Shown one piece after another: positions 4,665-48,213 of a DNA stretch of 64,000 nt. This DNA comes from Saccostrea echinata. Taxonomy: Eukaryota. The notes below the pieces were generated by a model. That model was not told the DNA's origin. It saw only the letters and a program-made list of their open reading frames with translations, and did no database searches. Within the stretch, counting starts at the first letter, position 1. Every line of letters starts with the position of its first letter. The stretch lies in contig NW_026889805.1 of assembly GCF_033153115.1 (NCBI RefSeq), positions 16,244,001 through 16,308,000 of the forward strand, written 5' to 3'. A program made the position numbers and the translations under genes.

Positions 4665-4733
4665 CTCTAAATCAGCACTTGTTGTACGATCACCCCTGGT
4701 TGCACTGACCGCTCCAGCAGTAGAAATGGTCAT
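4665..4733 (-). CDS. Putative alternative first coding exon A (MTISTAGAVSATRGDRTTSADLE) of an unidentified minus-strand gene
   Basis: gaaaATG start, 69 nt = 23 codons, ends GAG|gtaagg in phase 0; GC-richer than flanks; shares plus-strand tacctctaaatcag and the DLE end with exon D. Confidence 0.72.
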
Positions 4734-6594
4734 TTTCACTTGTCAGACAAGATTTCCAAAGACACTTTTCAAAGTTTTTTTAAATTTGAGACGATGCTAA
4801 CTTTTTATAATTAACAATTCTCTGTGTATCTTATCCTGAAACTTTATTCCGATGGGCAAATTGACCGCAACCGTGTTCAATTTACGAAAATTGTAATTTC
4901 CAATGAGAAAATTCAAAAGATAACGACTGTAAAACAACAATTCCTTGAAATCCAAACAAATAGATTCAATATGTATATATTTTTTCAAAACAGATCCAAT
5001 AATTTCATGGAAATTGCAGAACATGCGTAGAGTTTCCAACGATAACGTATATCTTCCTGCAGAGAATGCTTCAATTTGTTCTAAAATTTACAAAAGTCAA
5101 TCAAGAAAGCGAAGAAAATTACAGGACTCTGCCTAAGTACCAGCAGGTGACAATACAAACACGTTCACCAATACTAATGATTTTTTCCTCTCAATAAACA
5201 CTCGTTACAAGTAATTCCATTGATACTGTGTTATAGCGGTGAAGCTGACATACGAGATAGTATTAATTGTTTGTCCTGCTCAATCGTTATTTACGATCCT
5301 TTTTTTATGTAAATTGGGTGCTAATCAGAGCATCTGGCCAATGGACTTATAGTACGCTATACATACATATTCTCCTGGGTCCTTCTGACGATCTCTCCAA
5401 ATATTCCCAGAGACAGATATATTGACCTGGTTTAGCACTCATAAAGTCTTTACGGGTAGTAGGCATATGAGACCCGCATCCTCGGCAAAGCATATGTATA
5501 AAATCAGTCAGCAACTTTTTGTGCTATCATACGTTTGTATCGTAATTAAAAATCCTAATGAAAAGTCAATAAACGTCACTTAAAAAGAGTTCAAAAGAGT
5601 CCTATCATAAAGAACATAGAGTCCTGTGTTGTAACCGTTCACATCTGAATGACTTATTGTGTCTAATGTGTATGCGTCAGTGGTTTACAGGTAGAAATTG
5701 TATATACTGTAAGAATATAGATGTCGTTAATTAGTGCGCCCTGATGCTAACCTATTTCGAACACATCTAAGTGATCGCTAACTAGACACAGATGCACAGT
5801 TTCGTATTATCTCACTATGGCGCGATTTCATACCAAGAATGAGTGGTGAAATATACATAAATTAATGAAATTAATGATGATTAAAACTTAAGCATTTGCT
5901 AACGATGAGAGAAATTGTAATTCTGAATATGAATGAAAATTCATAATTCATTGACTTAACCCATTACCACCCTACCTGGGCCAGCATAACTGTGAATTGT
6001 GTAAAAGCAAACTCTTAATGCAGGCGGTTGAATACCTATATTAAAGGCCTTTGTATACGTATGCAAATGCAGAAAAAAAACCCAAAGCAAAGGTAATCTT
6101 CGATGTAGAGTAGTGAATCCACCGAAGTGTCATATATTTTTCATTGTTATTGAATAATCTTTGGTCTAGTTGCTTATGAGAGTATGCTCTTTTTTGCAAC
6201 TACAAAGAGATACATGTTTCATTTAATATATCAGAATGTTCCCTCGAGAATTAAGAGGTACATATATTGATTTTAGCAGTAGAACATAATGTAACTTCCG
6301 GTTTTAGACTGAAGTTTGTACATGTATAATGCATTTGAGCACCTTTACACTATATTATTACTGAATATGAATTTGTACAGTGTATGATTATATCTACACT
6401 TGTTAAGACAGTGATAAACCCTTTACACCAGAAAATTTATATAAACTTAAACACGTTGTGAGACGTCATGAGTATTTCGTGCATGTGTCGGCAAGAGATT
6501 CAGTTGTTAAGTCTAGATCTTTCTGATTTATGAAATTTACATACTGTGTTGGTATTTTCGGCTTTAAATGGCATCGCTCCCTAAAGAGATTTAT

Positions 6595-7122
6595 TAAAGA
6601 TATAGAGGATATTCAATGTTTTGTAGATGAATATGGAATTTATTTCACGAGTGGGACAGGATTTTTTTAATATTTTCACGAGTGCGAAGCACGAGTGAAA
6701 ATATCAAAAAATCCTGTCTCACGAGTGAAATAAATTCTATATTCATCTACAAAACATTGAATTTTCTGTTTATTACATTTTCTTTTCCCTTTGCCTCTGT
6801 TTTTTCTTAACCCAGTGTCATAGATAGGCTTGACGTCATACTTGAGCGGTTGAGACGTCATAGCTTAGCAGTTGTGAGATTGAAAACATTGCATAGCATG
6901 GATTTTAGCAACATATTTGGGAAGAAAATTGCAGTTTTAGCTCTATCAAGATGTTTAGTTACTATCTCTATCTTATGAGAGGTCAGAAATTATTTTTTAC
7001 TTACTTTGATATCCTTTCACACTGTGAGAGAATATCATTTTGGTATCCTTTCACACTGTGAGAGAATAGCACTTTTATTCAATAAATAAATCACAGTATT
7101 TCACTGTTGAAAATGTAATAAA
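6595..7122. mobile_element. Palindrome-headed non-autonomous element (tentatively Crypton-like)
   Basis: 152-bp palindrome 6611-6762 centred on GCGAAGC; second IR tttattacatt (6769) / aatgtaataaa (7112); TGACGTCA in body; no TSD seen; superfamily assignment is inference. Confidence 0.6.
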
Positions 7123-46807: not shown

Positions 46808-46867
46808 CTCTACTTTCAGAATGCCTGCAGGGTCATCCGGAAGTCGCCACGGCTTTAGAGCAGCCAT
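46808..46867 (-). CDS. Putative alternative first coding exon E (MAALKPWRLPDDPAGILKVE)
   Basis: 60 nt = 20 codons from ATG, ends GAG|gtaaga, phase 0; GC-rich patch; WxxPDD resembles exon F; weaker start context (C at -3). Confidence 0.58.
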
Positions 46868-48123
46868 TCGCCAAAAGTCAAGCTTAAACATAACACGGCA
46901 AATTCCTCGTAATAGATTTGATAGTTTACGAAACTTTTGCCATTTTAATGAAATTTAAATTGAACATCCCAACATAACACTAAAAAATCTTGATGAGTGG
47001 CACGGTGCAAGGTATTAATTTCTTCGTCTTTCCAATTTCGTCCTCGAGAAAATGGCATGCAAAATACCAGTTTGTGTCAATTTTTTACGAATAAATTATA
47101 CATCATCCCTGCACGACCATTCATTTTCGTAACAAGAAAAAGTTGTTTTAATGGATCTCTCGAGAATCTTTGACAATTAAGTGCAATATCATGGGGACTC
47201 AGCGTACATTTATTACAAAATACAATAACACCATTTCTAGATCGATCTCAAGGGTACCCGAAAAAAATGAAAAAAGTCCTGCATTTCCAAGGTTCATAAA
47301 TATTTGGCGATAAATCAGGTATCACAATATAAAATTTAAAAAAATCAAATCTTTCTGTTGATGTACAGAGATCCAAATGCAGAGCATTCATATCTATTTA
47401 TAATATTCACAACAAAGCTTCATAAATGCACTAGCCGCATTTTATGAATGCATCGTTATTTCAGTTCATAGTGGCATTATTAATAAGCATGAATGGAAAT
47501 AAAAGAAGCTGTCTGCAATACTTGCTACGTTACCAATGTAGTTTTTCCAAGGATTAAAAAAACCATATTATAACTGAAAACATGTAATAACGACTTCTAA
47601 CTCTAAAACAATTGCCTAGTCAGAAACTTGGGAAAATGTTCTTTTATAATTGCAAGGTCATTGCTTTACCTAATCTATTTTTTCTTCTTTTTCTTAGTTT
47701 ATTAATATCATTAATATTTAAAAGCAATCAACAGGTCGGAGATCATTAAAAATAAATAATAATTTTATCAGTTATAATGTATGTGTTTTTAAAATTTACA
47801 GACTTAACTTTCATAACCCCGAACATTTCCTCCAATCTGTCACAAGAAATAACCCCCCCCCCTGTCCTTCACACATAAAATACAAGTGACATCTTCATAC
47901 CCATATATAATTTGTAATTACAGACCTTCTAAAACTCATATTAAATCTTTGTTTATTAGTACTATGTGTCTCAAAGATTTGATTCTTATAACTTGCCATT
48001 TCGAAGATATTCTTGTCTGACTCTTCAATATTTCGACATTAAATCGATGAATGAAGTAATCAACGCACTTACTTAAAAAAAGGAGAAAGTTACTTTGGGA
48101 TAAGTAATTATTTTAAAACCTAC

Positions 48124-48213
48124 CTTCCTCCCTGTCTGAGGGTCAACAATGATGAGGGCATCATCAGGTGGGGCTTGCCACGACCCTCCTCCACTTGCAC
48201 CCCCGGAGTTCAT
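48124..48213 (-). CDS. Putative alternative first coding exon F (MNSGGASGGGSWQAPPDDALIIVDPQTGRK)
   Basis: gaaATG start, 90 nt = 30 codons, ends AAG|gtaggt, phase 0; strongly GC-rich versus flanks; MNS start like B and D. Confidence 0.7.

Follow-up and report, generated by a model that had tools for sequence, protein, structure and literature searches.

Which gene owns six short open islands scattered along the minus strand of an oyster contig, and are they alternative beginnings of one and the same protein? The stretch in question, 64,000 nucleotides of Saccostrea echinata (contig NW_026889805.1, positions 16,244,001 to 16,308,000; hereafter the window), was described in an earlier note, made from the letters alone, as carrying six variable first coding exons that are spliced to one constant region left of the window; the note could not name the host gene. 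Our analysis makes it highly probable that the six islands, here called A to F, are part of a set of 18 or more alternative first exons that belong to a single gene with a DPP6/DPP10-type membrane anchor, which would vary the cytoplasmic tip of one membrane protein by the mechanism set out below.

Six islands and a common second exon

Throughout, coordinates are window positions, negative values lie to the left of the window, and the islands are lettered from the window's left end. By direct reading, each island was found at the positions reported in the note, with an ATG and an open frame (the slash in each donor marks the exon end):

First exon A, 4665 to 4733, minus strand: 23 codons, donor GAG/GTAAGG; the window exon nearest to the shared exon 2, intron of about 76.7 kb
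First exon B, 16337 to 16405, minus strand: 23 codons, Pro-rich tail and DLQ end, donor CAG/GTAAGT
First exon C, 23885 to 23971, minus strand: 29 codons, polybasic middle, donor GAG/GTAAGT
First exon D, 40544 to 40624, minus strand: 27 codons, of the family that runs from MN and a Ser/Thr-rich part to DLE, donor GAG/GTAGGT
First exon E, 46808 to 46867, minus strand: 20 codons, donor GAG/GTAAGA
First exon F, 48124 to 48213, minus strand: 30 codons, Gly-rich start, W..PPDD motif, donor AAG/GTAGGT

All six donors match xAG/GTRRG and are placed right after a whole codon, i.e. in phase 0. The description of the islands as stop-free, ATG-started and phase-0 thus holds for every one of them, and the tags reported for three of them, polybasic in C, Pro-rich in B and Gly-rich in F, are seen in the exon sequences. 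The start of exon E is ambiguous because a further in-frame ATG upstream at 46891 would make it 28 codons long. The islands had also been called GC-richer. Their GC contents are 0.49, 0.41, 0.40, 0.49, 0.55 and 0.59 for A to F, compared to 0.334 for the window, with a standard deviation of 0.076 and a 95th percentile of 0.467 for background windows of 75 nucleotides. The enrichment is therefore clear for A, D, E and F, which exceed the 95th percentile, while B and C are raised by only about one standard deviation.

The shared exon lies outside the window. Exon 2 (L009:7857-7971, minus strand; window positions -72143 to -72029) is located about 77 kb left of exon A. It is preceded by a long pyrimidine (T) tract and an AG acceptor and begins on a complete codon, which fits the islands since phase-0 donors require a phase-0 acceptor. 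It is present as a single copy in the 923-Mb genome. Exon 2 encodes the juxtamembrane and transmembrane segment, and over its full length of 38 residues it aligns with residues 18-55 of human DPP6 (PDB 7ukg_I, E 1.4e-11) and, in the longer DPP6 form, with residues 76-113. As the alignment runs end to end in both forms, the oyster junction corresponds to the point where the vertebrate DPP6 variants diverge. The significant matches in the exon 2 search were DPP6 chains only, with no DPP4 chain. Exon 2 is followed by about 25 constant-region exons of the DPP4/6/10 family (-80.7 to -95.2 kb), which code for the ectodomain with its beta-propeller and hydrolase parts. With its end at -95.2 kb, the gene spans about 143 kb in total.

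For exon C the junction is shown directly. The S. echinata RefSeq isoform X1 (P0270, XP_061163914.1) maps at 100% identity, with residues 1-29 corresponding to exon C and residues 30-67 to exon 2 (-72142 to -72029), and exon C is thus spliced to exon 2 in S. echinata across a 96-kb intron. The phase-0 constant region that had been placed left of the window is thereby located.

The spacing of the islands, 1.3-17 kb, would also allow tandem genes in which every island heads its own private downstream exons, the case that the note had named as refuting its proposal. Nothing beyond this spacing speaks for tandem genes. First exons aside, the stretches among the islands and from the window to exon 2 yielded transposon remains only and no coding exons, DPP-like or otherwise; the open reading frames between the islands have either no Pfam match or a transposase helix-turn-helix match below cut-off, in line with the absence of internal coding exons noted before. 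Exon 2 and the one hydrolase exon tested are both single copy, and P0270 links C straight to exon 2, which refutes private exons for C. Given the lack of DPP-like exons among the first exons and the single copy of exon 2, we rejected the tandem-gene arrangement, and its probability appears negligible.

Isoform comparison revealed a second, independent variable site, which faces the outside of the membrane. Directly after exon 2, P0270 has a micro-exon of about 6-7 residues that P0277 lacks; this optional exon falls between L009:7857 and L010 (-72.1 to -80.7 kb).

Kinship, extent and presumed use of the first exons

Taken by itself, the pattern of ATG, open frame and donor does not go beyond chance. 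Scanning 184 kb for ATG-started, stop-free phase-0 open reading frames of 12-45 codons that end at GT(A/G)(A/G)G returned 61 such mini-frames on the minus strand, about 20 of them inside the window, where six are A to F. It is paralogy and orthology that validate the six islands. In an alignment, exons A to D are alike and form one family, in which an uncharged Ser/Thr-rich start is followed by basic residues and a DLE or DLQ ending. Exons E and F have a W..PDD motif in common, the E-versus-F shuffle test being nominal only (p = 0.03). We also compared A to F with first exons of isoforms annotated in other molluscs, using 10,000 composition-preserving shuffles per pairing, and every island had a significant counterpart (p ≤ 0.0005 throughout):

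Counterpart of A: first exon of Crassostrea virginica X17 (P0285), p < 0.0001
Counterparts of B: Magallana gigas X27 and X19 and C. angulata X20 (P0300, P0304, P0306), p < 0.0001
Counterparts of C: C. virginica X14 and C. angulata X6; the species' own isoform X1 is identical
Counterpart of D: C. virginica X9 (P0297), p < 0.0001
Counterpart of E: Haliotis asinina X2 (P0335), shared W.xPDDPAG.L..E, p < 0.0001
Counterparts of F: Babylonia areolata X3-X6 (P0155, P0346, P0341, P0351), p 0.0001 (P0155) and 0.0005 (P0341)

The abundance of such mini-frames on the minus strand of the window is what one would expect if the six islands were chance frames that happen to end at GT. However, every island matches a first exon annotated in another mollusc, and the remaining window candidates were never the best match of the annotated oyster first exons tested. 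On the strength of this orthology we rejected a chance origin, which is hardly conceivable for the set of six.

Two further MN-starting phase-0 mini-frames with AG/GTAGG donors lie at 30300-30356 and 26479-26514 (minus strand). None of the annotated oyster first exons tested had either of them as its best match, and both were left out of the count; they could be chance frames or unannotated first exons.

For A, B, D, E and F, the counterparts seen in oysters, abalone and whelk all join the same junction, and a D-type first exon is also found in Mytilus, unionids and gastropods. The isoforms compared come from two listings. The first comprises 15 of the 25 cluster members, with seven of the at least 12 S. 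echinata isoforms (X1, X3, X5, X8, X9, X11 and X12) together with S. cucullata, C. virginica and O. edulis. The second covers M. gigas (numbers up to X40), C. angulata, Mytilus, Haliotis, Babylonia, Biomphalaria, Physella, one unionid and one nemertean. Within each species the listed isoforms are identical from ELVG onwards, the optional micro-exon aside, and all differences lie before the junction. This pattern, in which isoforms vary only ahead of ELVG, is seen in S. echinata, S. cucullata, C. virginica, M. gigas, C. angulata and O. edulis, and it recurs in Mytilus, Haliotis, Babylonia, Biomphalaria and Physella. The search for isoforms with a common C-terminal body, which the note had put forward as a check, thus led to mollusc counterparts of A to F that all sit on one junction. 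RefSeq names the S. echinata gene 'dipeptidyl peptidase 4-like', and some M. gigas isoforms 'dipeptidyl aminopeptidase-like protein 6'. We propose that the first-exon array predates the split between bivalves and gastropods.

The cassette is larger than the six exons first described. When oyster N-termini were matched to the locus, a further twelve first exons of phase 0 emerged in the stretch that separates the window from exon 2:

Extra first exons, phase 0, from oyster N-terminus matching: -16.8, -22.7, -29.6, -35.1, -43.1 and -46.9 kb
Extra first exons, phase 0, from oyster N-terminus matching: -49.4, -55.5, -58.6, -62.3, -70.8 and -71.5 kb

Five of these twelve are exact matches to the listed S. 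echinata isoforms X3, X5, X8, X9, X11 and X12. The total comes to at least 18 first exons across 120 kb, with 12 outside the window and A to F as the distal third, and the variable coding part measures 6-41 codons (18-123 nucleotides). Three exons left of the window constitute a third paralogous family, beside A to D and E to F. The array would have grown through tandem duplication of first exons.

The host protein and its variable tip

P0270 contains a DPPIV_N domain (PF00930, E 4e-85) followed by a Peptidase_S9 domain (PF00326, E 3.3e-55) and gives strong matches to the structures of DPP4, FAP, DPP6 and DPP10, with full-length DPP6 at the top of the overall scores owing to the membrane anchor. 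By its anchor sequence, the host gene is DPP6/DPP10-like, and it is the sole S. echinata gene in which we recognise an anchor of this type. A second locus with a DPPIV_N match (G000:C5:15973883-15974128, plus strand, E 4.2e-9) indicates at least one other S9B-family gene in the genome. The genome also contains a Kv4/Shal gene (PF11601, 51 bits), located on C29 near 41,528,000.

Clustered protocadherins, UGT1A and plectin had been offered as analogues of the locus. The layout of variable and constant parts is indeed as proposed, but since the host gene is DPP6/DPP10-like its closest analogue is to be sought in vertebrate DPP6 and DPP10 instead. Tandem paralogous variable first exons ahead of a shared constant region are also found in clustered protocadherins and UGT1A, whereas the variable part in the oyster is a short cytoplasmic tip and not a whole ectodomain or substrate-binding domain.

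Vertebrate DPP6 (DPPX) and DPP10 (DPPY) are auxiliary subunits of Kv4 channels, and both possess alternative first exons and 25 common exons, with variant-specific expression and gating (PMC3973911). Like the oyster protein, they are type II membrane proteins with the S9B fold. The juxtamembrane/transmembrane exon is nearly identical, the cytoplasmic N-termini vary through alternative first exons that meet the same ELVG/ELG junction ahead of about 25 common exons, and very long first introns occur in both. The array differs in size, with at least 18 first exons in the oyster compared to five in mammalian DPP6 and four in DPP10. The proteins also differ in their catalytic residues. Mammalian DPP6 and DPP10 are inactive, the catalytic Ser being replaced by Asp or Gly (PMC4873792), whereas in the oyster protein the triad is complete, serine motif included: P0270 retains GWSYGG (residues 677-682), DWVYEEE (Glu-Glu motif), and DDNVHF and DQQH (Asp and His motifs). 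With the catalytic Ser, Asp and His and the Glu-Glu motif in place, the oyster protein is probably an active dipeptidyl peptidase, as is fly DPP10.

Drosophila DPP10 binds and gates Kv4.3 and cleaves Gly-Pro-MCA, and is thus an active peptidase (Shiina et al. 2016, PMC4873792). The fly protein and the oyster protein, the latter known from sequence, both combine a DPP6/10-like transmembrane region with a DPP4-like ectodomain that carries the catalytic motifs, and by this analogy we regard fly DPP10 as the best functional model for the oyster protein. The oyster first-exon battery is without a described counterpart in the fly; the text of Shiina et al. (PMC4873792) contains none of the words 'isoform', 'alternative' and 'splice' and mentions no N-terminal variants. 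KChIP1-4, the other family of Kv4 auxiliary proteins, likewise use alternative first exons for short N-termini that set membrane association and gating (PMC3973911); these are unrelated cytosolic EF-hand proteins with far smaller arrays.

Taken together, this suggests the following mechanism. Whichever exon of the array a transcript starts at, it encodes one type II membrane protein whose cytoplasmic tip, 6-41 residues long, differs from exon to exon, because the first exons end in phase 0 and share exon 2. In DPP6 and DPP10 the juxtamembrane and transmembrane region mediates Kv4 binding, unlike in DPP4 (PMC4873792). As in the vertebrate and fly members, the conserved transmembrane segment of the oyster protein would dock it on Kv4/Shal channels, and the variable tip would set gating, trafficking or expression in a variant-specific manner. 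In this way the oyster tips may tune Kv4 currents cell type by cell type. By analogy with the vertebrate genes we infer that each first exon has a separate promoter.

Several points weigh against this reading. The P0270 ectodomain scores about 500-520 bits against DPP4, compared to 460 against the DPP6 and 448 against the DPP10 ectodomain; the ectodomain is thus nearer to DPP4, and orthology with DPP6/10 rests on the membrane anchor and the gene layout. That the oyster protein binds Kv4 is something we infer from its relatives. Only C of the six window exons appears among the listed S. echinata isoforms. Finally, A to D each have an AG 2-7 nucleotides before the ATG, and a shared upstream non-coding exon may precede them.

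The scarcity of the window exons among the listed isoforms might mean that only some of the six are alive in S. echinata, with C in use and A, B, D, E or F surviving as untranscribed relics. Against this, all six retain the ATG, the open frame, a consensus phase-0 donor and raised GC, a counterpart of each occurs in annotated isoforms elsewhere, and the S. echinata isoforms X2, X4, X6, X7 and X10 lie outside the listed set. We consider such relics improbable. Given their intact anatomy and their counterparts in other molluscs, exons A, B, D, E and F are presumably used in S. echinata as well.

The AG dinucleotides ahead of A to D could be acceptors, in which case the islands would be internal exons that are used in a mutually exclusive way and preceded by one or a few non-coding exons common to them, and variation would arise by alternative splicing from few promoters. 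These sites are without a clear pyrimidine tract, however, and an AG within 7 nucleotides is frequent by chance; the four sites are moreover not independent observations because the exons are paralogues. In vertebrates, the DPP6 and DPP10 variants come from alternative initiation at separate first exons (PMC3973911, PMC3366920). We therefore judge internal exons to be an unlikely explanation, if slightly less so than relics, and favour first exons with promoters of their own.

What the tips might do at the pore is suggested by the vertebrate exon 1a variants, which confer N-type inactivation by pore block, an effect lost when five N-terminal residues are deleted (PMC3973911, PMC3968176). Cys-13 of exon 1a is conserved (PMC3968176). 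Ball-and-chain block of the pore may also apply to the tips of A to D. In an N-anchored comparison over 12 residues, C, D and their mollusc relatives resemble the start of vertebrate exon 1a (MNQTA; p 0.006-0.03), while A and B show no significant resemblance. A hidden Markov model built from 20 mollusc exons of the A-D type did not place vertebrate exon 1a above composition-matched decoys, 18% of which score as well, and Cys-13 is absent from A to D. Searching with residues 1-45 of P0156, an isoform of the 1a type, returned four mollusc proteins only, too few to trace the family outside molluscs. A link between A to D and the exon 1a inactivation ball is thus weakly suggested. Because the profile fails, A and B are not significant and Cys-13 is missing, it is doubtful that the A-D exons of bivalves and gastropods are the protostome counterpart of exon 1a, i.e. 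a ball-and-chain particle acting on Kv4/Shal. If they were, pore block by an auxiliary subunit would be older than the divergence of protostomes and deuterostomes, and oysters would carry four tandem 'balls' on differing chains (polybasic in C, Pro-rich in B) together with a dozen other tips. This would amount to a promoter-selected code for the kinetics of A-type currents, borne by a protein with its peptidase activity still intact.

The design as such is already known for vertebrate DPP6 and DPP10, and the mollusc isoforms are already partly present in automated RefSeq models; no paper combining 'dipeptidyl aminopeptidase-like protein 6' and 'oyster' came up in our literature search. If the reading of one DPP6/DPP10-like gene with an array of first exons is correct, the alternative-first-exon design of these Kv4 helpers is not a vertebrate invention. 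Molluscs have the same junction and the same membrane anchor with a much bigger battery of tips, some families of which occur in both bivalves and gastropods. The locus may provide a tractable system for asking in what way short tips on the cytoplasmic side adjust A-type potassium currents and whether N-type inactivation borne by a subunit is ancestral. For annotation, the analysis names the host gene and flags five first exons as possibly missing from, or unseen in, the S. echinata models.

Surroundings of the array

The large first intron contains an uninterrupted open reading frame of 1143 amino acids (L002:4237-7665, minus strand; window positions -5763 to -2335) with an endonuclease domain (Exo_endo_phos) and a reverse transcriptase domain (RVT_1, E 6.9e-31). 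It looks like the apparently intact ORF2, i.e. the second open reading frame, of a non-LTR (non-long terminal repeat) retrotransposon of the LINE (long interspersed nuclear element) type. Inside the window, a frame of 197 amino acids at 22132-22725 (minus strand) resembles by eye the C-terminal part of this ORF2 and has no Pfam match. Between exons C and D, a frame of 100 amino acids at 34273-34572 (plus strand) matches the Tc1/Tc3-type helix-turn-helix PF01498 with an E of 8.8e-7, just below the curated cut-off, and on this match is classified as a transposon remnant.

Just upstream of exon F there are two arrays of a 21-bp unit with about 20 copies each (49769-50192 and 52394-52810), in opposite orientation and about 2.2 kb apart. 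They account for the long repetitive open reading frames in this region and may be the arms of a foldback-type element. The 16 kb from exon F to the window's right end contain no recognised coding sequence. Beyond that end, at distances of 0.9 and 13.7 kb, the plus strand carries two tandem Cys-loop receptor genes (L012:884-1588 and L013:3703-4335), both with Neur_chan_LBD and Neur_chan_memb domains (E 5e-21 and 4e-20). As they lie on the opposite strand, the DPP6-like gene and this cluster of ligand-gated channels are divergent neighbours.

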